From contig JBLDXI010000026.1 of the NCBI GenBank assembly GCA_047495785.1, positions 1-64,000 of the forward strand: a stretch of DNA of 64,000 nt, written 5' to 3'. The position numbers and the translations under genes were made by a program. The DNA is from Lepidodermella squamata (taxonomy: Eukaryota > Animalia > Gastrotricha). Shown one piece after another: positions 5,101-32,451 of this stretch (position 1 is the stretch's first letter; each line of letters opens with the position of its first letter). The notes under the pieces were generated by a model. The model was given only the letters and a program-made list of their open reading frames with translations, ran no database searches and had not been told where the DNA came from.

Positions 5101-7501
5101 GAATTCGATTGATGAGCTAGCTACTAATAACGTAATTCAGCGAAGTTCAGTCATGCGTATCACGGCAAGTGACGGCATTTCGTCAACAACTGATGGCTCT
5201 GGGTTGTTCAGTAACCTTGGCGAGTCGCAAACTATGAATTCAGCGCTATTGATCGCCATTGTTGCCGGGGCAACTCTGATCATGTTGATGGTTATCATTG
5301 TCACGGCTGTTGTTGTGACATCGCGAGCCCGTCGCAACAGGCATCGAGCTTGGCGGAAGGGCGGCCGTGACCGGGATCCTCGTAATACTACAAGTACTCG
5401 GTCTTTGCATTCGGCAGATTCGGTCAGTACGATAACTTTCCGAGGTGGCGTTGGAAACTCGGGATCGGGTCTCAGCGAGCATGGAACCATGGTTATTGAA
5501 AATGGCCATGTTCTTACAGGTAAATTCTTGCGATAATCATATAATTTAAATACCGTTGTGTTACCTAAATTGACCCAACCATTTTAAAGTAACCCTAATT
5601 TTTTCAAAACAATGTGTTCACTGAGTGATTGGCTAGCTCAAAATTTGGAATATTTCTAGAAAAAATGGACAGTTAGCAGAGCGTAGTTTCGATCTACAGA
5701 CCTCTGGGTTATGGGCCCAGCGCGCTTCCACTGCGCCACTCTGCTTGTCTGGTTCTAGGGATCTCCGACGCTCTTGTAAGACGTATAAGCATGGAAGTTG
5801 AATCCCGATTTTGAATCCCGAGTAAAACTTGATACTCAGGATTCAATGAGAATTTAAAAAATTTCCCCAGCTGAAGCTTGAATAGTTCTACCAATTTGAA
5901 ATGTATCCAAGGGTTCCAACATGGCGGCTCAGTAGCTTAGTGGTAGAGCGTCTGTCTCGTAAAGAAGATCGCGGGTTCAATTCCCGCCTGGGCCTATCCT
6001 CTATTTTATACTCGCTCGTTGAAATCATCAGTGAAATGGCAGACTTGATCAAGTTTACAAAAGCTTCTTATGGCTGGAAGCAGTGGCGCGCTTCTGTAAC
6101 TCAGCGACTTGAGAGCCGGGCTTGCCGAATGGCTGGCCGGTGGGAGCCCTGTCTCTGGATGTCACATGTCGATCGAGCGCCCCGTGTAAGTACGCCATCA
6201 ACATGGTCGGTGCGGCGGAGGCCGTACTGCCCAGGTTGCGTAATGACACGTCAAAGGTCAGGTCCTAACGGAAGCAGCCTAACGATGTGCGTGGTGAGCG
6301 GTACCGGGACAGTGCTTGTGAATGTGCGCCTTAGCCAGCCCATCGGTTCAGCTGGACGTAAACCTTTTTTTTAAATTTTTCTTATATTTTTAAAATTATT
6401 TTTAAAATGTAATGATTTTCATCCTGATTGCTATAATGACCTTTTTTATCTTATTCAGGTGGCGCCGGAAGCCCAACCTCTAGAGCCAATCTAGCCGCAG
6501 CCGTGGCAACAATCGACCGTCTTCCACTGGTTCTCCATAACAAAATCAATGACATGTTGATCCATGCGAAGCGCATCAAGGTCACCAGCACTTTGGTCCG
6601 AGGCCAATACGGCGATATTTGCCTGGGAAAACTATGGCCAACAAACGCTTCAACACAACACGACACAATAACTGTAACCATCAAAACTCTAAACCGCTTT
6701 GTCATGGACCTGGACTCGACCTCGCTGATTGAAGCTTTCCTTAGCGACGCTCTGATGTTGAAAGGCTTCTACCACCGCAATGTATCTGCTCCATATGCGA
6801 TCGCCTTCAGTGGACAACGGCCTTTAGTCATCTACCCGTTCTACGAAAACGGCAGCCTCAAGTCTTACATCACGAACAAGAACAAAGAAATTCTAGTCTT
6901 TCAACTGCTCGACTTTGCTGCTCAAATCGCGACAGCTATGGTGTACTTATCAGCCCAAAATTTCATCCATAAAGACCTGGCGACCCGAAACTGCGTCGTT
7001 ACGCCTGATTTCGAAGTTAAGGTGGCTGATAATGCCCTGGTTAAGGACGTCCATGGCCGAGAGTACGTTTACGTCGAACAAGCTCGCGATTTCCTGCCTG
7101 TCCGCTGGATGGCTCCGGAATCTTTGACAGATCTTCAATTCTCGCTCAAATCCGACGTATGGTCATTCGGAGTGCTGGTCTGGGAACTTCTAACGCGAGG
7201 CAGATTACCCCATAGCCAGGTCCATAACAGCGAGATAGTGGCTCATCTTCAGCAGCAAGTTCAGCAGCACACCTTGGGCGGATCTAGGCCAGTTATGCGC
7301 CTACCTCGGCCCTCGAATGTCCCACCTGAATTATGCGACATTGTCGACAAGTGCTGCCAACTCGAACCGAGCCGGAGACCGACTTTCGGCTGGTTGCAAG
7401 AGCGCCTGACTACGCTGCTGGACCAACGCCACATGATGGCAGCTTATAACGTTCCAATAATGCCTGTTGAAGGCGGAAATTCGCCGACGACTGGGACCTG
7501 A
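2149..7501 (+). CDS. Receptor tyrosine (pseudo)kinase: signal peptide, C-type lectin, Cys-rich (GCC2_GCC3/ephrin-receptor-like) repeat, 3 IPT/TIG domains, Thr/Pro mucin stalk, TM, RYK-like kinase. Exons approx. 2149-2221, 2277-2488, 2685-2902, 2992-5519, 6459-7501
   Basis: GT-AG joins keep frame. Signal peptide MLLVTFLSILSTSALLW. CTL motifs WIYYVGKCY...FNEAGNIC...LASI. CVPCAPGTYQP...CEPC. IPT pattern PHLNSIDP..G...GSTMVKLEGANF. TM LLIAIVAGATLIMLMVIIVTAVVV. Kinase motifs VTIK, HKDLATRN, DNALVKD, PVRWMAPE, SDVWSFG. Confidence 0.85.
5674..5745 (-). tRNA. Initiator tRNA-Met (CAT), copy 1, intronic
   Basis: Reverse complement AGCAGAGTGGCGCAGTGGAAGCGCGCTGGGCCCATAACCCAGAGGTCTGTAGATCGAAACTACGCTCTGCTA: A1-U72, three G-C pairs in the anticodon stem, ATCGAAA T-loop. 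A T-run terminator follows. Confidence 0.97.
5926..5995 (+). pseudogene. tRNA-Thr(CGT) copy 1 with a 2-nt deletion in the anticodon stem (probable pseudogene)
   Basis: Identical to 20337-20408 except TCTGTCTCGTAAAGAAG versus TCTGTCTCGTAAACAGAAG. A and B boxes are intact. Confidence 0.85.
6073..6368 (+). ncRNA. 7SL / SRP RNA, copy 1, intronic
   Basis: About 296 nt. Alu-domain start GCTGGAAGCAGTGGCGCGCTTCTGTAA, helix 6 with GGAG loop (GGTGCGGC GGAG GCCGTACTG), helix 8 CAGG...AGCA, conserved TGTGAAT, poly-T Pol III terminator. Confidence 0.93.
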
Positions 7502-9699: not shown

Positions 9700-11244
9700 A
9701 TGAAATATTACTGTCAAGTTTGTGGCGTTTTAACGCGGAATCGAGTCCGAACCGGTGCAGCGTTATGCCCGGCCTGCAAGCGGTTTTACCTGCGATACCG
9801 CGGTAAATCGCAGATGTTGCGATGCCTGACCGAAACCAACAAATGCTTGGAACACGAGCCTAACACGGTGAACACAGGATCTGGCAATGTGTTCCGCATC
9901 ATGTGTAAGGCCTGTCGTATTCAAAAGTGCTTCGACCTCGGGCTGGAGAGTACCAACAGCGAGCAAACCAATGATTGCGAGATAACACTCGATAGAAGCT
10001 CAGCATCGCCATCGGGCTCTTCATCAGATATGAAAGCTGAATCATCACCCCCGCCGGAAAAGCTGCAGAAATGCGCCGATGTCGTCTACTACAGCGGCTA
10101 TCAAAACAACCATCACTACCCCAATGCTGCCTCTGTTGTTCCATCATTCAATGCCGGTGATTTGAGCATAACAGAAGAGACATTGCGAGGCATCACCTTT
10201 TCAGGGCGATTCTACGTTGAAAGCATTAGAAGCGTGAGTTGCCTTAATTTTTTCCTTAATTTTTTTGACCTAGATTCTGCTGACAATTAGGAGCCCTTCA
10301 GAATGCACAATGACATTACTGATTTCGGCAACGATGCTTGGAAAAACGAGCTCCTCGGTTTCTTTTCCTCGGCTGTTGTCATTCTTAAACAATTTTTATC
10401 GTCTCTGCCCGGTATAAAAGTCACGCTTGACCTGCCGGTTTTTTATGTCTTAATCATCCCTCTAGGTTACCGAGAACTGTCGTTGGATACCAGGTGTAAA
10501 ATGTTTACCCGGTGCTGCTCGCAAATTAGCATCGCCGAGTGCTGTTCCCACGACGAAGAGCCGCTGATAATGGGCATGAAGCAGAAGATGTGTGGCAAAA
10601 TACTCGAGCGGTTAATTCCTGAATTCGCTGTAAGTATACTTAACTACCGCCTACTACTGATTTCAACTCCTCATTTCCTATAGTTTGTCATCCCTCAACA
10701 AAATGAGATCTGGAGATTCATCAAAATGTGGCAACCTGATGCTGTCGAATTCGCGTTTCTTCTCGCTTTCCTCTTTTATCAAAGTAGTGAGCAGTATCAT
10801 TGGAAAAATATTCCACTCATAACATCGATTTTCGTTTTAGACGACCATGATTTGACTACAGATGAGAATCTCACTATAAGGAATACCTCTCTGCAAATCC
10901 GAGCCGTTCATTGGGCCTACATCGTGCAGGTCTTTGGATCAATGGATCAGCAGTGGTTGACACAGCGGCAATCAATGCTGTATAAAGTTATGGATTTATT
11001 GAATAATGCTGCAGCCACTCGACATGAAGTTCATGCCCTCGAATCAGTTCACGCGCGCATTTCTACTATCGTCAATATGAACGCGATATTTGCTCAGATT
11101 TTAGACTACTGGCGAAAGGAAGCAGTCATGCCGATGCCTACTGTTGGCTCATCGTCTGAGCCAAGCCCAGCAATAACTCCTTATTTTGGTCGTAGCTTTG
11201 AATTCGGTGTTAACTCTGAACTTTCAATTCAGCCTAATATTTAA
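9700..11244 (+). CDS. Divergent nuclear receptor NR-a (C4 DBD + LBD), 5 exons
   Basis: CQVC...CPACKRFY...C..C...CKACRIQKC zinc fingers. LBD signature FLSSLPGYRELSLDTRCKMF and WQPDAVEFAFLLAFLFY. Confidence 0.88.
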
Positions 11245-11653
11245 ACAAGTACGATGTGATGCTCTGCGGTAAGAATGTTGATTGGTATTTTGCATGGAAT
11301 GGAATAATTCTAGCATGATATTTAATATCAGCCTCTTTTTCTGTTATAAAAGCTGTAGAGGTGTGCATTCTAAGTCTGGAAACATAATGCTGAGTGTATT
11401 CGAAAACAATAAACAACATTCATACCGGTACTTTGAATGGCTATACTATAGGAAATGACCCATTTTATGTTCCACTGATAGGTTTTTTTAATATTTCTAT
11501 CCATCCTAATTTGCACTTCTCATGGATTGGCTCCAAGCTTGATGGTATGGGCGAAAAATGTCATTTAAAATCCTCTAGATTTTGTGTAAGGAGATGGCTA
11601 TTGGTTTATCTTTAGGGAATATTTGATTGAAATCAGGTGTTGTGATTTTTCTA

Positions 11654-13138
11654 ATGCCCAAGGACAAGCAGGCCTGTGAAATCTGTGGTGTGGCTACTCG
11701 GTACAGGGTTCGAAGTGGTGCTGTAATTTGCTCAGCTTGCAAGCGTTTCTACCTTCGCTTCCGGAACAAAGATGGTGAATTACCATGCAAGTCGGGAAAT
11801 CACAATTGCTTGAGTGACGGGAATGTCAGCAATGCAGTATCAAGTGTTGGCTCGGTATTCAGATTCATCTGTAAGGCTTGCCGGTTGAAAAAATGCATCA
11901 ATCTTGTCGAGCGAGAAGACTATGGTGAAAATTCCAACTACAGCCAGTTGGAAAATGTCGACCAAAATGAGCCTATACAGCCAGTAGCGAAAACCACGAG
12001 AACAAGTTCTACGTCATCATGGTCTGGAGTCAAAGCTTCAAACATTCCTAATGATCCCCAAGAGCTTCCTCAGTCTTCCACCTCAATTCCTGTGTTTAAT
12101 GCTGGGGATCTGGAAGCAACGGAGAGCGTAGTGAGTGACTTAACTGCGGTTACACGTGCTTACTTGGCAAGTCTAGACCATGTAAGTTAATAAACTACTA
12201 CAGATGTACCAGTTGAAAGTCACTTACTTCTAGGATCCATTCCGACTCACTGATGGCTTACCAGGTTATGAGGTAGATCGAGAAGGTTGGATTCACGCCA
12301 ACGCCTTCTTTACCTCTGCGATGGTTGCTCTAAAGGAGTATCTGGAGGCCTTACCAGGTTCGTTTCTTTTACATCAAAAGCTGATTTCTCTAACTTGTAT
12401 CACTACAGGCTATTCATTACTTTCGATTGAATCCCGGTGCAAAATGTTCGTTAGGTGCTGCTCTGAGATCAACATAGCCGAGAATTGTTATCACAATCAG
12501 CCGTTGTTTCTGGGGATGAAAAAGGAGAGTTATCAAAAGATCTTGGACCGAGTTCCTGCGTTTTCTGTAAGTCTCCCATCTCCCACTTCCAGCCTTCCTT
12601 AAAACTTTCCAATTTGTTCGAATTTAGTTCGTGATACCACAGCAAATCGAAATTTGGCAATACATGAACCGATGGAGGCCTGATCCTGTAGAGTTCGCTC
12701 TTTTGCTGACGTTCTTCTTTTACCATGGGAGTGAGTAGTATGAAAGATTACTTTTCAAAGCATTGGCATCTAATATTATACATAGATTGGGATTGTCTGA
12801 CTTTTGCTGAAGCTGGGTACGCTGAGAGTACTCTGTTCCATCTAAGATCGATTTATGACGCCTATTGCGTGCAGCGTTACGGTGGAATGGGACGTGCATG
12901 GATAGATCAGCGAAAAAGGATGATGGCTAAAATCATCTCTCTAATCCATTGGGCGACTAAAACCCGTGCTGAAGTTCATGTACAAGACATGGTGAGGCAA
13001 GGCATTGAAGGCCTTATTGGAACCAATCGTGTGTTTGAGGACGTTATACAACGTTGGAGAACTGCCGCGGCTGTCAGTGCCGAGCCATCGGTAGCTAAAT
13101 ACATTTTACCGGAAGATGCAGAAAATCAGACCTCATAA
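11654..13138 (+). CDS. Divergent nuclear receptor NR-b, tandem paralog of NR-a, 5 exons
   Basis: CEIC...CSACKRFY...CKACRLKKC. Same intron positions as NR-a. LBD YLEALPGYSLLSIESRCKMF and WRPDPVEFALLLTFFFY. Confidence 0.88.
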
Positions 13139-13328: not shown

Positions 13329-15824
13329 TTAGTAGTGGCTAGAGACATCTATAGTTAATGTCGGCTTTCTCATGAGTGGGAGAAGCCACGTCAATCCTGT
13401 CGTGGCTGAAATCAAGCACGAAGTGAATCCTATCGCCATTTCTTGATCGACAAGATTGCGCACAACCACGACAATCAATATCGTGGCGACAAAAATTGTA
13501 GCAGCATTAACGACACCGAGACTGATGTACGTGAACTCGGGAATATTCCTCGAGCCACCAAGATGACGTAGCTTGAATATAGTAATAGCACCTACCAGCA
13601 GAAGCGCAATATTGATAGTAACAATCGTCATAATCCAAGCTAAATTCGAGGAAGATTGGCATGTTGTAAAAACAGTTTCAACCAGGGTGTCTTGAATGAC
13701 GTCGTAAACAGGCTTCTGCTTTGCCTGAAAGCATGTAAAATTGTCACCGATAATCCATATGGTGACAATCCAAGCAACTACGACTACGAAGGCAATAACA
13801 GCTTTCGCACAAGACTTGTCTATGATCTCAATATACAGGTTTTGTATCCCTGAGTTCCCACCTGAGAATGATGATGACGCGTGAAATGATGCTGACAACC
13901 TATGACTCTCACTTCGATGCATATATTGTTGGCGACGCTGATTCGCGACGTGTTGCGGGGCCATTCTAGACTTTTGACCCTTGTTACTGTTAACAGAGTT
14001 GTTACCTTGTCGAGGAATAGGAGAGGCCCCTATTGAGAATCTTGACCCAGCTATTGTACCCCTCTTGAGCATGTACGTTACTGATCTCAGGCAAACAACC
14101 GCATTGATAAGAGAGAACCCTATCGATACTAGAACAATCCTTGAGATCCAAATAGCCTTAGTTCCGTAACTCAGATCAGCCGTGAAGAATAATCCGCCAA
14201 TGTTGAGAGCAATCCCTCCAACATATCCCAAGATTTTTGTCAAAAACATTCCTCTTTCTCCGTAGTCGCTGAAAAAGGCAGATCTTATTAGTATAGCTGT
14301 GCCCAGAAGGTGAATACATGACGATAGTATTGCTAGAACAAGAACTACTATGAAGACTTCACTAGAGACACCCATAAGTTCGATTAGCTGCAACTTCGAA
14401 TCTCGAGGAGGTAACCCTTCAGCAGTTTGCCACACCGGATCACGAACTTTCTTCATCCAGTAGTGCTTGTAGTGATATCCATTCGTTTTAGGATGCTGAT
14501 AAACGTTGTTGATATACTGTAAACGGTCTTTGGGCGTCCAGTAGCTGACAAACTGAATGTCACCATCGACTTCACCAACATCGTTGTAGCGCATCCTGCC
14601 CATCCGCAATCCCAAATAGTCCACAGCTATTGCAGTCTTGTTTACTACATCTGCGACGATATCAGGCCGGTCTCTCATGTTCCTCAGAGACATGTTTTGA
14701 GCTTTCAGAGCCAAGTCTGCATTATGAAGAGTTATCAGGCCCTGCATCATGGTGTCATGGCAGAGCAGCCTTCGCTCGTAGTCATACACCTTTTCGCGCG
14801 TATTGTTTGTGTATCGGTCGTAGATTGCATCGAATTCGGTCAAGTCGTAGCCTAGAACAGTTTTCACACTCGGTTCATTCGTTGTCATAATTGGAGCGAC
14901 CCAGTATGTGTACTTCATCTGTTCGATCACAACGTTCCGAAAACATCCGGGGCTTATTTCGTTGGCCAGTCCTAAGGGGTCTGCATAGCCAACCCCCAGA
15001 AGTATCAAAATGTACCTGGGACCAGTTAATCCAAACTTGTAAGTCTGACATAGGAACTTCCAGATCCAGCCAGCACTTGAAGATGACAGCACTATGATTC
15101 GGACATCGCTGCTCAACAGGTTACGCATCGAATCGTCGTCGACATCGAGGACAATGTCGAAGAACCCAATTGAAATGTTAGTCTGGTCCAATGCTACCCT
15201 GAGAAGAGCCGTTGCTGTTGTATAGTCGAAAACGCTCGCAGCGTTAGTCAGGATGCCCATACGCTTCCAACCACCTGATTCTGCGACGAAACGAGTGATG
15301 GCATACGAAAGAACACGGCCAGTTGATCGCATCATATACAGGTTAGGGTATAGAGTGCGATCTGAGAGGAATGGCGCGGCACAAGCGATACTCACACTAA
15401 CCGAGTAGAGATGCTTCAAAGGGGGAACCATAGCTTTGCATCCAGTGGACATCTGAGGTCCGACGATCACAGGTGACTGGTAAGTATTGTTCCGATCAGA
15501 ACCTTCGTAACTTCGACGGAAAGACGCTGCTAAGCGGGCCGCGTGAACTCCGGTGTTCTCGTCTTCAAATTGAATCTGTGCACGACGTTTGAATATATTT
15601 AGTTGTTCAGTTCATGAAACTACCTCAATGTTGTAGTCGGGAAGAATATCCGAGCGACTGTTTGCTATGTCGACAGCGATTTGAGAGGCCGTGCGGCATG
15701 CATATCCATTGGACGGAGCATTGCCCGTGAATGACATCATCTCTAGCACTACCATTTTATACGGCTTGGTAGCAAGAATTACAGCAAAGTTGCATATCAT
15801 CAGCGAACTACGGAGAAGCATCAT
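13329..15824 (-). CDS. GABA-B-like class C GPCR, copy A (exons 15824-15624, 15575-13329)
   Basis: Signal peptide. Venus-flytrap motifs AVDIANSRSDILPDY, IVGPQMSTGC and LSDRTLYPNLY. No Cys-rich domain. Seven hydrophobic helices. Confidence 0.88.
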
Positions 15825-16597: not shown

Positions 16598-19094
16598 TCA
16601 TAAACTGTTTATCGAATTCAGGGGGGCTGGCTTAATCAAGGGCCATATCCAAGTGAGACCTGTCGTCGATGAAATCATACAGGCTAGGAAGCCGATAGCC
16701 ATTTCTTGATTTATAAGGTCGCCAACGACCAATACAATTAAAATAGTGGCCAGAAACGTGGAGATGGTATTCACTAAACCCAGAATCAGGAAAGTAAACT
16801 GCGGAATCGTTCTCGGGCCCCCAAGGTGACGTAGCCTGAACGCAACAAAAGCCGCGGCCATCATCAGCAAAACATTCATCAGAACAAGTGCCATGATCCA
16901 AGCAATGTTCTTTGTAGATCGGCAAGAAGTGTAAACGGTCTCAAAGATAGTGTCTTCAATTAAATCGTAGACAGGCGGCTTGATAAGTCTAAAGCAGCGG
17001 AAATTATCGCCAGTCAGCCAAGCTGTAAGGATCCAGCCAGTTATTCCCGTAAAAATGATGGAATTCTCAGCGCAGGATTTATCAGCTGATTCTATCGTAA
17101 CGTCAGCAACCACTGACGAAGTTGGTTCCGAAGAGTAACGAGCGGGCGTAACGCTGATGAGAATCGGCGTTGAAGATTTTCCGCCTTGAGGATACACGGA
17201 AAGGGTTTTGCTTCGCGGCCTTTCGAATATCCTTTCGCTGTCGACGGTCTTAACTTGTCTGGCTATCGTTGAACGGACCGCTGTCGGCAACCTCGGGCGA
17301 ATATGAAAGCTGCTTCTGAGCATAAAAGAAATTGGTCTAAAACATACTACAGCATTTAAAATGGAGAAGCCTGTTGAGACAAGTACGATTCTCGCAATCC
17401 ACAAAGGCCTTGCGATATCAGTAGTATCAGCGGTAAACAGGACACCACCAACATTCAGAGCAATCCCACCAACATGACCCATAAGTTTCGATATACTCAT
17501 GTCTGCTGAAACTAGGCTGCTGGAGGCTAAAGACCTAATTATTAGAACAATGCCAGTAAAATGTATCGATGACGATATGATTGCGAGAGCAAGGACGATA
17601 AAGAAAAATTCTCTAGGCACCATGGCGTACTTCATGACAAGACGAATACTGTCCCTAGGAGGTCGCTGATCAGCAGTTTCCCAAACTGGCTCGCGAATTT
17701 TCTTCATCCAGTAGTGCTTGTAGTGATAACCATTTGTGTTAGGATGCTGATAGACGTTGTAGATGTACTGCAAACGGTCTTTGGGCGTCCAGTAGCTGAC
17801 AAACTGAATGTCACCATCAACTTCACCAACATCGTTGTAGCGCATCCTACCCATCCGCAATCCCAAATAGTCCACAGCTATTGCAGTCTTGTTTACTACA
17901 TCTGCGACGATATCAGGCCGGTCTCTCATGGTCCTCAGCGACATATTTTGAGCTTTCAGAGCCAAGTCTGCATTATGAAGAGTTATCAGGCCCTGCATCA
18001 TGGTGTCATGGCAGAGCAGCCTTCGCTCGTAGTCATACACCTTTTCGCGCGTATTGTTTGTGTATCGGTCGTAGATTGCATCGAATTCGGTCAAGTCATA
18101 GCCAAGAACAGTTTTCACATTCGGTTCATTCGTTGTCATAATCGGTGCGACCCAGTATGTGTACTTCATCTGTTCGATCACAACGTTCCGGAAACAGCCA
18201 GGGATCACCTCGTTCGCCAGACCCAAAGGATCCGCATAACCGACTCCAAGAAGGATTAAAATGTACCTGGGTCCGGTTATTCCAAACTTGTAAGTCTGAC
18301 ATAGGAACTTCCAGATCCAGCTAGCACTGGAGGATGACAGAACTATGATTCTGACGTCGCTACTCAACAGGTTACGCATCGAATCGTCGTCGACATCGAG
18401 GACAATGTCGAAGAATCCGATGGAAATGTTAGCCTGGTCCAATGCAACCCTGAGAAGAGCAGTCGCTGTTGTGTAGTCGAAAACACTCGCAGCGTTAGTC
18501 AGGATGCCCATGCGCTTCCAACCTCCTGATTCTGCCACGAAACGAGTGATGGCATACGAAAGAACACGGCCAGTCGAGCGCATCAGGTACAGATTAGGGT
18601 ATAGAGTTCGATCTGAAAGGAATGGCGCGGCACAGGCGATACTCACGCTAATCGAATTCATGTGCTTCAATGGCGGAGCTAACGCCTTGCAACCAGTTGA
18701 CATTTGTGGCCCAACGATTACCGGCGACCGAATTGTATTGATCCGGTCTGAGTTTTCAAAGCTACGCAGAAATGCACCAGCAGCTCGTGCCGCTTGTACT
18801 CCTGTGTTTTCATCTTCGAATTGGATCTAAACAACAGTAATTCATCCCACGCTTTACGATTTCGCAATCACTAACCTCGAGTTGATAGTCAGGAAGGATG
18901 TCCGATCGGCTGTTAGCAATATCGACGGCAATTTGTGACGCGGTACGGCAGGCGTAGCCATTTGCAGGCGCATTTCCGGTGAAAGACATCATTTCTAATA
19001 TCACCATCCGATAAGGTTTCATCATGTAAGTCGATGAAGTTGCTACGTCTGAAATCATAGCAAAGCAAAGAATTGCCGCGTAGTACTCAGGCAT
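16598..19094 (-). CDS. GABA-B-like class C GPCR, copy B (exons 19094-18876, 18826-16598)
   Basis: Tandem paralog of copy A with the same single intron, a near-identical flytrap domain and 7 TM helices. Confidence 0.88.
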
Positions 19095-20094: not shown

Positions 20095-20166
20095 TAGCAG
20101 AGCGTAGTTTCGATCTACAGACCTCTGGGTTATGGGCCCAGCGCGCTTCCACTGCGCCACTCTGCT
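20095..20166 (-). tRNA. Initiator tRNA-Met (CAT), copy 2
   Basis: Identical 72-nt sequence to 5674-5745. Confidence 0.97.
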
Positions 20167-20336: not shown

Positions 20337-20408
20337 GGCTCAGTAGCTTAGTGGTAGAGCGTCTGTCTCGTAAACAGAAGATCGCGGGTTCAATTCCCGC
20401 CTGGGCCT
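20337..20408 (+). tRNA. tRNA-Thr (CGT), intact
   Basis: Full cloverleaf: acceptor GGCTCAG/CTGGGCC, anticodon arm TCTGT-CTCGTAA-ACAGA, T arm GCGGG-TTCAATT-CCCGC. Confidence 0.96.
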
Positions 20409-20488
20409 ATCCTCTAATTTTTACTCGCTCTTTTCGAGTTCAAAAGTGAAACTAGCAGACTTGATCAAGTTTACAAGAGCTTCTTATG

Positions 20489-20784
20489 GCTGGAAGCAGT
20501 GGCGTGCTTCTGTAACTCAGCGACTTGAGAGCCGGGCTTGCCGAATGGCTGGCCGGTGGGAGCCCTGTCTCTGGATGTCACATGTCGATCGAGCGCCCCG
20601 TGTAAGTACGCCATCAACAAGGTCGGTGCGGCGGAGGCCGTACTGCCCAGGTTGCGTAATGACACGTCAAAGGTCAGGTCCTAACGGAAGCAGCCTAACG
20701 ATGTGCGTGGTGAGCGGTACCGGGACAGTGCTTGTGAATGTGCGCCTTAGCCAGCCCATCGGTCCAGCTGGACGCAAACCTTTT
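20489..20784 (+). ncRNA. 7SL / SRP RNA, copy 2
   Basis: Four substitutions relative to copy 1; T7 terminator at 20781-20787. Confidence 0.93.
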
Positions 20785-21506
20785 TTTGATTTTTTTTAAA
20801 TATTTTTCGAAAGTTTTTGAATTTTCAATAATTTGTATGCTCGTCAACCGAATTTACTCCGGCTTAATTTTTCATTTTTGGTTGAATACTGCAATGAGAG
20901 ATAATTTCGGAGAAAACCATGTTTTTCGAGTGCATGGAAAGTAAATAAAATCATTTGTTACATCGTATGATGAATCATCATTGTCCCCAGCTAACATGCT
21001 AGCATCTTAATTTTTGATGCAATCGAAATTTGGGCACGGAGCCTATTTTGAATGTTAGGAACGGCGGCGGCTTACGCGGTCGAGCTCAGCAATGTCCTCG
21101 TTTCGGTCAAACCATATCCTAAATCACCAAAAATTCCATTATTCCACGGTATTCGCAATCACAATTCGCCGTTCTCATAGCCGCAAAAGAAACCCGTTCT
21201 CGAATATTAATCACATTTTTGGAAAACCAAAACCGTAATGTGTATGTTAGTTGGATGGCTTTAAATGTGAACGTGAAATTATCTTCTGATCCCCATTTTT
21301 CAAATCAATTTTTTTATTATGGATTTTCGCGCGTCATTGGTCAAATCTGGTCCTTTTTTATTGGAGACCCAACGTCTGATATAGAGAACAATGAATGAAC
21401 AATGAATGACTGTCCAATATCTCATATTTTCGAGGGCAGAAGCTAGGCGGGAAACAGCCTCGTGGCGACCACACCCTCTCAACCACGCCCTCTTTTTTCT
21501 TCTAGG

Positions 21507-26970: not shown

Positions 26971-28306
26971 ATGTCTACTACCAGAACTGCAGGAGATCAG
27001 TATAAAAGGAATTAGCAATCGATTAAAATAGTTAAATATGATTTTTCCAATTCAGGGAGTTGGGTCTAGTCAACGGTGCACCGAAACAAAGAAAAAAGAG
27101 CGAACAATGCGACGTCATTTGTTGGAAAACGGTCACCGGATCGGTCATCTTCATCGCCTTGGCTTGTGTCATTATTCTTGGAGTCTACATTTTCCATCAA
27201 AGAGTACTTTTTCGGTTCCATCTTTGACCTAATATTAATAATTGATGTTATAATAGGCTATAATCAATCGCTTGGAGCAGCCATCGGAACCCTCAGCTGC
27301 TGCTGCATTGGAATGCGAAGATCCAATGGTTATTAGTCCCCTACCTGAAGCTGCGATCACCTGCGAATTCAACGTTGCAGAAGAAACGGCCGGGTTTCTA
27401 ACCTTCGACAACGGATCTGTCATTACGACTGGCAAGAATTTTCCTCAAAATACAGTGCTAATTCTACACTGCCCAAAGGACCACCGGGTCGTAGATGGTC
27501 GATCGTTTTCGAGCTGTAGAAAGAGTGGAGAATTCGCGCCGAAACTCGGCACTTGTCTATCACCGAGTCGATTGGAGGATGAACAAAAGAAGCTGGCGAA
27601 ATCAGCGGCTACGGGAGATTCAACTGAATTGGCTAGGTTGTTATCCCTCGGCTATCTCAACGTCAACTGGCGAGATCCTTCCGAGATCGATGAATGCTTT
27701 CTATGGCCTGTAAGCTCTGGCACCGCGCTACATCGAGCTGTAGATTGCAGCCGCTCGCCAACAGCTATTTTACAGCCATTGATCGACGCTGGGGCAGATG
27801 TTGATTCTGCTGAGACAACAAATAACGCAAGGCCTCTTCATTTCGCGGCAGCTCTCGGAAATTCGGCTACGGTTGACCTGCTCTTGAAGAAGGGCGCGCA
27901 TGTCAACGCGACAATGAAAGATGGGACATCGGCGCTGTGGCACGCCTCGGAACAGGGCCATCTATCAGTGGTGAATCTTCTCATCTCGAGTAGGGCTGAT
28001 TTTTACGCAACAACCTGGGGTGGGGGCTATTCGCCACTTCATGCCGCGGCAGCTAATGGTCATCTCGAGGTGGTGAAAGCATTGTTGGACGGCAATAAAT
28101 CCGACAAAAATTACATCAATTTCATAGCGGAATCTGGGAAAAGTGGCTCGCCGCTTATTGAAGCAGTTCTGAAAAATGAACTGGAAATTGTTCTGGAACT
28201 GGTGAGGCGAGGCGCAGATGTCAACCTGCAAAAAATTGATGGCAGTACAGCAATTTCTATCGCACAGCAAAAAGGATACGATGAAATTCTGCAAATTTTA
28301 CAGTGA
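26971..28306 (+). CDS. Type II membrane protein with Sushi/CCP domain followed by about 6 ankyrin repeats, 3 exons
   Basis: Exons 26971-26999, 27056-27203, 27257-28306. TM VTGSVIFIALACVIILGVYIF. Sushi C...LHCPKDHRVVDGRSFSSCRKSGEFAPKLGTC. ANK motifs TALHRA, PLHFAA, SALWHA, SPLHAA. Confidence 0.8.
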
Positions 28307-29435: not shown

Positions 29436-30473
29436 TCAAAAGCGAGCGCCTTTTTGTTTTAGAAAGTTGACAACTTTATATTGTTTCGCTTGAGTAGCTA
29501 GCATCAACGGGGTCTGGTTGTTTTTGTTGCGCGCCTCCAGCATCAACTGATCACGACACCGGTCCAACATGAATTCAACAACACGAAGATTGCCTTTAGC
29601 GGCTGCTAAATGTACGGCTGAATTTCCCATAGCATCATTCGCGAATAAGAAGACATTTCGTTTCGCCAGATAATCAACACACATCCAGTGGCCCTTTTCG
29701 GCCGCATTTAGTAGGGGCGTCTTGCCGTTAGCATCCTTCGACTCGGCTGAAATCTGGCACGTTTCCAACAGGTATTTCAACAGCTCCAAATGACCACTCG
29801 CAGCCGCTATGTTAGCTATAGTATCTCGTAATTTCGACTCGGATTCTAGGAGTAATTTTACGAGATCCAACTTGCCGGCTTCCGTTGCTTTCTGTAACAA
29901 AGCCGCTGTGTCTAGGCCGCTTAACTTCGCCCCTCGTTGAAGCAGCAATCGAACAGCATCGACGTGATTGTGTTCGGCTGCGAACATCACCGGAGTTTTC
30001 TTAGCACGACTCACGTGATTTATGTCGAATAGCGTAGGCGGCTCAAGGTCAAGGAAATAGGTCAAAATTTCCACGTGGCCACAAGCCGCTGCTAAATGAA
30101 GGGCGCTGTAGCCAAGCTCGTAGAGTCTAGGACTTATCCTAGGGTCGTAATCCAGCGGCCTTAAATCTGCACCGGAGTCGACCAGAAATTTGACGAGCGG
30201 CAAATTTCCAAGGGCGACTGCTTGGAGGACCGGCGTTTGTTCCGGGAATCCGACCGGTAAAGGCTGCCAAGTTACATGGTGGATATCGGCCTTTTTCTCC
30301 TGAACCAAATACTTGACCAGGGTTAACTTCCCGCTTGAAATTGCTGCATTAAGAAGTGTAGCTCGATTCACGCGGTGTTCTTCTTCCAAAAGATCGGGAT
30401 CACTTTTCAAAATTTTCTTTACATCTTTCAAGTGGCCTTTCGCAGCAGCATCGTGAAGTTGCACCAGTATCAT
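29436..30473 (-). CDS. Intronless ankyrin-repeat protein
   Basis: About 9 ANK repeats (SALHLAAACGH, TPVMFAAEHNH, TPLLNAAEKGH). Start taken at MILVQLHDAA. Confidence 0.85.
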   Translation of the reverse strand: MILVQLHDAAAKGHLKDVKKILKSDPDLLEEEHRVNRATLLNAAISSGKLTLVKYLVQEKKADIHHVTWQPLPVGFPEQTPVLQAVALGNLPLVKFLVDSGADLRPLDYDPRISPRLYELGYSALHLAAACGHVEILTYFLDLEPPTLFDINHVSRAKKTPVMFAAEHNHVDAVRLLLQRGAKLSGLDTAALLQKATEAGKLDLVKLLLESESKLRDTIANIAAASGHLELLKYLLETCQISAESKDANGKTPLLNAAEKGHWMCVDYLAKRNVFLFANDAMGNSAVHLAAAKGNLRVVEFMLDRCRDQLMLEARNKNNQTPLMLATQAKQYKVVNFLKQKGARF

Positions 30474-31332
30474 TGAAGCATAAAAAGCAGTTTTGATAGA
30501 GAGTTTTTTCACACGCACCGGGGGGCCGTATCTCAGGCTGTATAGCACAGGTATAATAATGTGATATTGCCTAAAACAAGCAGAAAAACAACGTTTTATT
30601 ACAATATTTACTAAGTGATTCACTCAAAGGCATATTACATCAGCAATTTTATCAAAAAACTTGGCGGTCGAAAATATAATCTCGCAGTATCTGCGAAAAA
30701 TCGTTATCTCTATTATAGTACTAGAATTATACATGCATCCAGCAGCCAGCTCCAGAAGGGCATTTCAGCTGTGATATGATAATCGATGCGATAATGCGCA
30801 TCGCTTTTATGCATTATTTGTGGTATAGGGATAAAAAAAATTGAATTTTTAAGAGATGGCACAATAATTTTTTGTACTATCCTCTAATTGGCAAAACGCG
30901 ATCGAATGCGGTTCTCCTTCAAGGAAATTCAGAACGCCGGAAGACTCTTCTGGTAAATTCCCAATCTATACAATATCAAAGGAAATTGCGGTGTGGTGCA
31001 AGGGTGCACGCAAAACTTTATTGGTTTCGCGATGACTGGAGAAGGAAAAAAATTTATACAACACATCGTTTTACATATACACAAAACATTATTTTCTTCA
31101 TATCCCATTCGAGTCCTTCGCTTTATTGCGCCCCCTGAATCACCGATCGATACAAGTAATTGATGAATGGCACGGCGAGTACAACTACTACCACAGCGGC
31201 TGAACCACGCTGCATATTTAAAGAAATAATGATGAATAAAAAATGTCGCGCAATATAAATTTGCACAAGGGGCTGGAATTATTTCCGTGAACAAAACCCG
31301 CCGCCGCATGGGAGCTGTTGCCGGAAAAAGCA

Positions 31333-32451
31333 TCATTCAACGCCGCCTCTAAATTTCAACAAATTCGCAGCATAAATTTGATTTCGAGCCGAGGCCACAG
31401 ATAAAGCGGTTTGCTGTTGGTTATTCCGGCGGTTAATCATTTCCTTTGATATTCGAAGTATATTTGCCATTATTTGATTATGGCCATTCGCAGCAGCTAA
31501 ATGAAGCGCAGTGTCCCCGTTGCAGTCGGACGTAGTAACATCCGCAGAATTTTCAATAAGGTGACTGACCACGTCAAGATGACCATTCTCGGCTGCGCTC
31601 ATCAGCGCTGATTTCCCATTCGAACCCACGGAATCAATGTCGAGATGACATTTCTTCAACAGAAATTTCACTGTTTGAAGCTGACCACCAGCAGCGGCTG
31701 AATTCAGCAGAAGATCCCCATTTGAATTTGTAGAACTCAACAGTTCAGGTTTAAGATGAAGAATAATTTTCAGCAATTCTAAATAGCCGGCTGCAGCCGC
31801 CTTATGAGCAACACTGTCGAAATCGAACCCATCGAGATCGATTCCTTTTTGTTGAATAAGGAAGGAAACGACTTCCAGATGACCATTTTGGCCAGCCAGA
31901 ATAATCGCGGTGTAATTACTCGCGTTTCGAAGATTAATTTCTGCCCCATTTTGAAGGACCAAGAGATGAACTATGCTGAGATGACCATTAGATGATGCAA
32001 CCATTAGAGGGGTTTCGACAATTTTCGAGCCGACCACTCCGTTCAATGATTCAGGATTAAGTCGTAATAGGTAATCGGCAATGTCCAAGTGGCCACATCT
32101 AGCGGCAAAGTGAAGAGGAAGATGCCGGGTTGAACTGTCTTCCGACATAGGAACGGCCCCATTTTCCACGAGGAGTTTAACAATTTGAAAATGACCAAGG
32201 GTTGTAGCAAAATGTACAGCAGTTTGGCCGTTCGATCTTTTCGTTAAATCGGCTCGTTTTTCCGTAACTAGGAATTTGACCAGAGGTAAACTCCCACTTT
32301 TTATTGCCCAAAATAACACTGTGTCGCTAGCTTCCAGCAAATCGGGCTTCTTTTTCAGGATTTTCCTAACCTGAGCAAGCCGTCCAGCTGTAGCAGCCTC
32401 ATACAAGGCCGTAAGGTCGCGATTTTCAGGTGACATGAGTTCAAAAGCCAT
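31333..32451 (-). CDS. Intronless ankyrin-repeat protein, tandem paralog
   Basis: 372 aa, about 10 ANK repeats. N-terminus VRKILKKKPDLLE matches VKKILKSDPDLLE in the neighbour. Confidence 0.88.
   Translation of the reverse strand: MAFELMSPENRDLTALYEAATAGRLAQVRKILKKKPDLLEASDTVLFWAIKSGSLPLVKFLVTEKRADLTKRSNGQTAVHFATTLGHFQIVKLLVENGAVPMSEDSSTRHLPLHFAARCGHLDIADYLLRLNPESLNGVVGSKIVETPLMVASSNGHLSIVHLLVLQNGAEINLRNASNYTAIILAGQNGHLEVVSFLIQQKGIDLDGFDFDSVAHKAAAAGYLELLKIILHLKPELLSSTNSNGDLLLNSAAAGGQLQTVKFLLKKCHLDIDSVGSNGKSALMSAAENGHLDVVSHLIENSADVTTSDCNGDTALHLAAANGHNQIMANILRISKEMINRRNNQQQTALSVASARNQIYAANLLKFRGGVE

Follow-up and report, generated by a model that had tools for sequence, protein, structure and literature searches.

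Textbooks treat the tetraloop of helix 8 and the adenosine contact that it makes with helix 6 as invariant in the SRP RNA of eukaryotes and archaea, and gene finders use them as anchors. A GNRA loop at the apex of helix 8 is near-universal. Can an animal 7SL RNA carry a different loop at this position, and if it does, must the particle be rebuilt around it? The question is raised by a 64-kb stretch of DNA from the gastrotrich Lepidodermella squamata (contig JBLDXI010000026.1), referred to here as the window. An initial annotation, made from the sequence alone, described two 7SL copies in which helix 8 is closed by UAAC on a stem matching bacterial 4.5S RNA, and proposed from this a lineage-specific rewiring of the contact between helix 6, helix 8, and SRP19.

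Two 7SL genes in paired Pol III cassettes

Scanned against all Rfam families, the window yields two full-length matches to RF00017 (Metazoa_SRP), which has a gathering score of 70. Copy A occupies positions 6073..6367 on the + strand (178.6 bits, covering model positions 1-299 of 299 and not truncated), and copy B occupies 20489..20783, also on the + strand (178.9 bits, full length). A search with the Rfam metazoan SRP model was one of the checks suggested by the initial annotation, and its run on the 64-kb window confirms that these are real animal 7SL genes, both matching RF00017 at approximately 179 bits against the cut-off of 70.

The architecture of the two RNAs is that of a metazoan SRP RNA nearly throughout. 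In the Alu domain, CUGUAAC aligns to the consensus CUGUAAu of RF00017, which preserves the UGUNR motif, and helices 3 and 4 are paired. The same alignment contains the long helix 5 in both genes. The apical loop of helix 6, the SRP19 site, is GGAG in copy A (6217..6220, + strand), a canonical GNAR loop with A at position 3 that cmscan aligns to the consensus GGAG, and the equivalent site of copy B carries the same GNAR loop. In helix 8, the symmetric loop AGG/AGCA that forms the SRP54 M-domain site equals the consensus in both copies (CAGG...AGCAG). The minimum free energy (MFE) fold of the whole 295-nt RNA of copy A reproduces helices 5, 6, and 8. Each gene ends in a Pol III terminator on the + strand: a T8 run at 6365..6372 for copy A, inside which the Rfam match ends, and a T7 run at 20781..20787 for copy B. 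An AT-rich flank follows just 3' of the copy A terminator, at 6377-6413.

Each 7SL gene closes a Pol III cassette of three genes, in which a divergent tRNA-Met(CAU) on the − strand is followed by a tRNA-Thr(CGU) on the + strand and, 77-80 nt further on, by 7SL. The tRNA-Met gene lies at 5674..5745 in cassette A and is 100% identical to its partner at 20095..20166 in cassette B. The tRNA-Thr gene of cassette A (5926..5995, + strand, 58.3 bits) ends 77 nt upstream of 7SL, and that of cassette B (20337..20408, + strand, 74.8 bits), which is intact, ends 80 nt upstream. Conservation between the cassettes is strongly graded. The 7SL genes are 98.6% identical, with four differences in 295 nt, and the tRNA genes are 97-100% identical. 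Identity is 85% in the spacer between tRNA-Thr and 7SL, 69% in that between tRNA-Met and tRNA-Thr, and about 45% in the outer flanks, which are not alignable. Spacers and flanks have thus decayed around a near-constant 7SL, which indicates that the duplication is old and that both copies have been kept by selection, gene conversion, or both.

Two features upstream of the genes bear on their promoters. The tRNA-Thr gene of cassette A has lost 2 nt from the 3' strand of the anticodon stem, and its A-box and B-box regions are unchanged. A deletion of this kind with intact boxes would fit a role of the upstream tRNA gene as a promoter element of 7SL. The last ~40 nt before 7SL (6030-6072 and 20446-20488) are near-identical between the cassettes, reading GCAGACTTGATCAAGTTTACAA.AGCTTCTTATG, and are far better conserved than the remaining spacer. 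This block is a candidate upstream promoter, with a TATA-like TTTACAA approximately 20 nt before the 7SL start. As for transcripts, 24 public sequencing runs from 15 studies contain part of a stretch that is 54% 7SL; seven of these runs are labelled RNA (root, plant, and activated-sludge metatranscriptomes) and contain 18-35% of the sampled words of that stretch. Both loci are probably working, expressed Pol III 7SL genes.

Cassette A appears to lie wholly within a 939-nt phase-1 GT-AG intron (5520-6458; splice predicted) of a receptor tyrosine kinase gene, one exon of which ends at 5519 and the next of which starts at 6459. A TIG/ephrin-receptor-like ectodomain and a transmembrane helix are encoded upstream of this intron, and the kinase exon lies downstream. 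The orthologue of this receptor kinase in a relative (P0121, contig L125, 6011-9877) is 93% identical in its kinase part and is a single uninterrupted ORF across the intron point. The related-organism ENA contigs reached through the DDC-like and receptor-kinase neighbors (L122, L123, and L125) contain no tRNA or 7SL gene. Since the orthologous ORF is uninterrupted and L125 has neither tRNA nor 7SL, the predicted intron and the Pol III cassette within it are found here but lacking in the relative. For the ORF that is open across the 7SL gene, no counterpart was matched in the protein collection. The neighboring DDC-like gene has its best named matches in molluscs, a brachiopod, and an annelid, at 54-57% identity, and reaches 51% with Brachionus.

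Several other ORFs were noted in the window. Between the cassettes, two adjoining long ORFs on the − strand (13329-15470 and 16598-18703) have ANF-receptor ligand-binding domains, the first also with a class C 7TM domain, and look like tandem class C GPCR genes. Two ORFs on the + strand (9700-10290 and 11627-12190) give weak matches to the nuclear-receptor C4 zinc finger, with E values of about 1e-4 to 1e-3, and are possibly tandem divergent nuclear receptor genes. Further on, three clustered ORFs at 27272-28306 (+), 29436-30623 (−), and 31333-32451 (−), of about 350-400 aa, encode ankyrin repeats; the product of the last has no exact entry in the public gene collection.

The helix 8 loop and its stem

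The distal part of helix 8 consists of the SRP54 site, a symmetric loop, and of a stem of 3 bp. It spans 6256..6279 (+ strand) in copy A, with UAAC at 6266-6269, and 20672..20695 (+ strand) in copy B, with UAAC at 20682-20685. In both copies it reads GGUCAGGUCC-UAAC-GGAAGCAGCC, and this 24-nt string was verified at both sets of coordinates. The pattern is specific: a search of the window with its 19-nt core, allowing up to three mismatches, finds two sites, both of them helix 8, against 0.01 expected by chance. In each RF00017 alignment UAAC forms the apex of helix 8 opposite an upper-case GAAA, where U1 and C4 score non-positive and the central As match. MFE folding gives the same 3-bp UCC/GGA stem and 4-nt loop for the whole RNA and for the arm in isolation, and both the folds and the Rfam alignment close UAAC with a C-G pair. 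Neither copy has a GNRA loop with A at position 4, and the original reading of a non-GNRA loop at the helix 8 apex of two full-length genes is therefore upheld. Nor is the loop a sequencing error, as had been argued from its presence in both copies. The description of the two copies as diverged holds for their flanks but not for the genes themselves, which differ at only 4 of 295 positions. The UAAC loop is a genuine lineage quirk.

The stem on which this loop sits is less distinctive than its match to a bacterial RNA would imply. E. coli K-12 ffs reads GGUCAGGUCC-GGAA-GGAAGCAGCC, and its 10+10-nt flanks are identical to those of the 7SL copies, so that the E. coli stem given in the initial annotation is correct. 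The match to bacterial 4.5S RNA is thus exact, but it is not a bacterial signature. An archaeal SRP RNA (197.5 bits to RF01857), found on the only metagenomic contig matched by the helix 8 flanks when the 4-nt loop was left free, has the same 10+10 nt with GGAA. Identical flanks in E. coli, an archaeal SRP RNA, and an animal 7SL place this stem state in all three domains and make it uninformative on origin. The stem sits in the part of SRP RNA where most positions are universally conserved. Two scans of viral contigs gave no match. A horizontal origin of domain IV from bacteria is rejected, since the archaeal stem is identical and all other parts of the RNA are metazoan.

The loop itself has many bacterial counterparts. 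One genome per bacterial and archaeal species was scanned for the hairpin CAGGUCC-URRC-GGAAGCAG, and an identical URRC hairpin was found in at least 120 bacterial species. Among the matches listed for these species, the loop is UGAC in 104, UGGC in nine, UAAC in five, and UAGC in two. The five listed bacteria with UAAC are three planctomycetes, an Anaerolinea, and an Acidimicrobiia MAG, and Rfam calls all five RNAs bacterial SRP RNA. Rosenblad et al. (2013; PMC4091067) describe URRC as "another widespread alternative loop" in bacteria, and together with the species found here this substantiates the statement of the initial annotation that URRC loops occur in bacterial SRP RNAs. Nothing suggests that the URRC loop is shared by descent between these bacteria and the 7SL genes of the window.

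Among eukaryotes the expectation is very different. The rule given for helix 8 is a GNRA loop whose A4 clamps helix 6 (PMC4605306, PMC2905702). Zwieb and Bhuiyan (2010) describe this adenosine clamp along with GRRA loops throughout the archaea (PMC2905702), and Wild and Sinning (2014) describe an A-A pair stabilized by SRP19 (PMC4615810). In known eukaryotic and archaeal SRPs, then, A4 of helix 8 pairs with an adenosine of the helix 6 loop (PMC4605306, PMC2905702, PMC4615810). With A4 replaced by C, the canonical A-A clamp cannot form as described, and a C in this place truly departs from the norm of Dumesic et al., Zwieb and Bhuiyan, and Wild and Sinning. Among the papers covered by a full-text search, none mentions a URRC, UGAC, or UAAC loop in a eukaryotic cytosolic SRP RNA; their statements on these loops in SRP RNA concern only bacteria or plastids.

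How the loop may be accommodated

The explanation that we consider reasonably probable is that these are working 7SL genes whose GNRA loop became a GNRA-like loop of the URRC/UMAC type, which is tolerated in this lineage. It builds on the two genes and how well they are conserved, on the sequence of the loop and the fold of its hairpin, and on the bacterial cases, and it supposes expression, a GNRA-like three-dimensional fold, and near-neutrality of the change. The apical loop of helix 8 would have passed in this lineage from GNRA to the URRC/UMAC type, UAAC in the present case, through a joint change of positions 1 and 4 (G..A to U..C) that left the two stacked purines in the middle and the C-G closing pair as they were. 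The UMAC class (U, A or C, A, C) comprises non-GNRA sequences with a GNRA-like motif that occur in ribosomes and in phage boxB RNAs (PMC12550061, citing Zhao et al. 2012). Since UMAC loops take a GNRA-like backbone fold, the UAAC hairpin probably still presents the same shape to SRP19 and SRP54, and the internal loops that bind SRP54 are untouched. The sole part affected would be the helix 6-helix 8 adenosine clamp, which would be weaker or would be rebuilt using A3 or C4.

What may make such a change tolerable is that receptor recruitment is no longer a task of this tetraloop in eukaryotes; without the receptor-tethering job that it has in bacteria, it would be left with a structural role alone. 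According to Hwang Fu et al. (2019), the mammalian tetraloop no longer tethers the receptor as the bacterial one does (PMC6781444). Human SRP with a GUAA, GUCG, or UUCG loop in 7SL retains near-normal SRP-SR GTPase activity and targeting in vitro, and the same tetraloop changes cost E. coli 20- to 200-fold (PMC6781444). Strict neutrality is a different matter: the reviews give A4 as conserved in all eukaryotes, which implies selection on A4 and argues against it.

The rewiring proposed in the initial annotation would be a compensated one, in which the loss of A4 removed the clamp and SRP19, perhaps with SRP54 or SR-alpha, co-evolved to join helices 6 and 8 in another way. The non-positive scores of U1 and C4 in the metazoan Rfam model and the fixation of UAAC in both conserved copies speak for a change of this depth. 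Helix 6 nevertheless retains its canonical GGAG, so that no compensation is seen on the RNA side, and human SRP can be assembled on RNA with non-GNRA loops, UUCG included, and is functional in vitro while its proteins are unchanged. The genes for SRP19, SRP54, and SR-alpha, where the co-evolved changes would lie, are outside the 64-kb window. We judge rewiring to be somewhat unlikely, and a near-neutral substitution accounts for the data at least as well. Also rather unlikely is a lineage with URRC in all of its 7SL genes in which the S domain assembles through an altered SRP19 contact or through none. Taken together, UAAC is more probably a tolerated look-alike loop than the mark of a rebuilt machine.

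Two further explanations would remove the loop from the working particle altogether. The cassette copies might be silent or minor, with the functional 7SL transcribed from another locus of the genome that has a GNRA loop. Dead copies would be hard to reconcile with the conservation profile of the two cassettes, in which the 98.6% identity of the 7SL genes compares with 69-85% in the spacers within the cassettes and with none outside. The upstream spacer blocks are conserved as well, the terminators are intact, and the share of words in the RNA-labelled runs is compatible with a near-identical 7SL; that both copies are silent or minor is accordingly very unlikely. Alternatively, bacterial contamination or a chimeric assembly might have supplied a domain IV of bacterial type, a suspicion that rests on the 10+10-nt flanks equal to those of E. 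coli ffs and on URRC being a bacterial trait. Against this, the 295-nt RNA around the hairpin has helices 5 and 6 and an Alu domain of metazoan type, and the hairpin is present in both copies, whose outer sequences differ. Copy A, moreover, is predicted to be intronic in a receptor tyrosine kinase gene of animal type, and the same stem flanks in an archaeal SRP RNA reveal a pan-domain state. The context of both copies effectively refutes an artefact, to which we assign a vanishingly small chance.

Comparison with known SRP RNAs and tetraloops

An animal 7SL gene that is conserved, is present in two copies, and bears a URRC/UMAC loop of bacterial style on helix 8 is thus real, and a tolerated GNRA-like loop is the reading that we carry forward. 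The RNA itself is very well known; what sets this one apart is the loop of helix 8, which should be of moderate interest to SRP specialists. A natural replacement of G..A by U..C would mean that the constraint on this loop is escapable in vivo, in agreement with the tolerance of human SRP in vitro. The UAAC 7SL is, moreover, a natural substrate with which to test the contribution of the clamp to SRP19-driven assembly. For annotation the consequence is practical, as 7SL searches by patterns that require GNRA would miss such genes. The understanding of SRP function is unchanged, and nothing yet shows that the particle works differently here.

Set beside metazoan 7SL (RF00017, clan CL00003), the two genes share the UGUAA of the Alu domain, helix 5, a GNAR loop on helix 6, the symmetric and asymmetric SRP54 loops of helix 8, and the T run of a Pol III terminator. 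They differ in the loop of helix 8, where UAAC stands in place of the upper-case GAAA of the model and both G1 and the clamp A4 are missing, and in their placement 77-80 nt behind a tRNA gene.

The likeness to the bacterial URRC SRP RNAs (RF00169 and RF01854) lies in the hairpin CAGGUCC-URRC-GGAAGCAG, which is identical, UAAC included. The bacterial RNAs, however, are roughly 100-190 nt long, lack helix 6 and SRP19, and use the tetraloop to tether FtsY. The 7SL RNAs described here are 295 nt long, with helices 5 and 6, a eukaryotic Alu domain, and an animal gene context, and so do not belong with the small bacterial RNAs.

Among tetraloops, UAAC fits the UMAC (UNAC) pattern U-(A/C)-A-C exactly and, as in that class, sits on a Watson-Crick C-G closing pair. 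The structural data on UMAC loops come from phage boxB and rRNA, and none from SRP RNA, so the GNRA-like fold proposed for helix 8 is an extension from those RNAs; the UMAC example of phi21 boxB lacks the sheared 1-4 pair. A functional parallel is found in the engineered loop mutants of human 7SL, which likewise place a non-canonical loop at the same position of a metazoan SRP, with little effect in vitro. Those mutants are laboratory constructs tested in vitro, whereas the genes of the window are natural ones in which a loop other than GNRA has become fixed.
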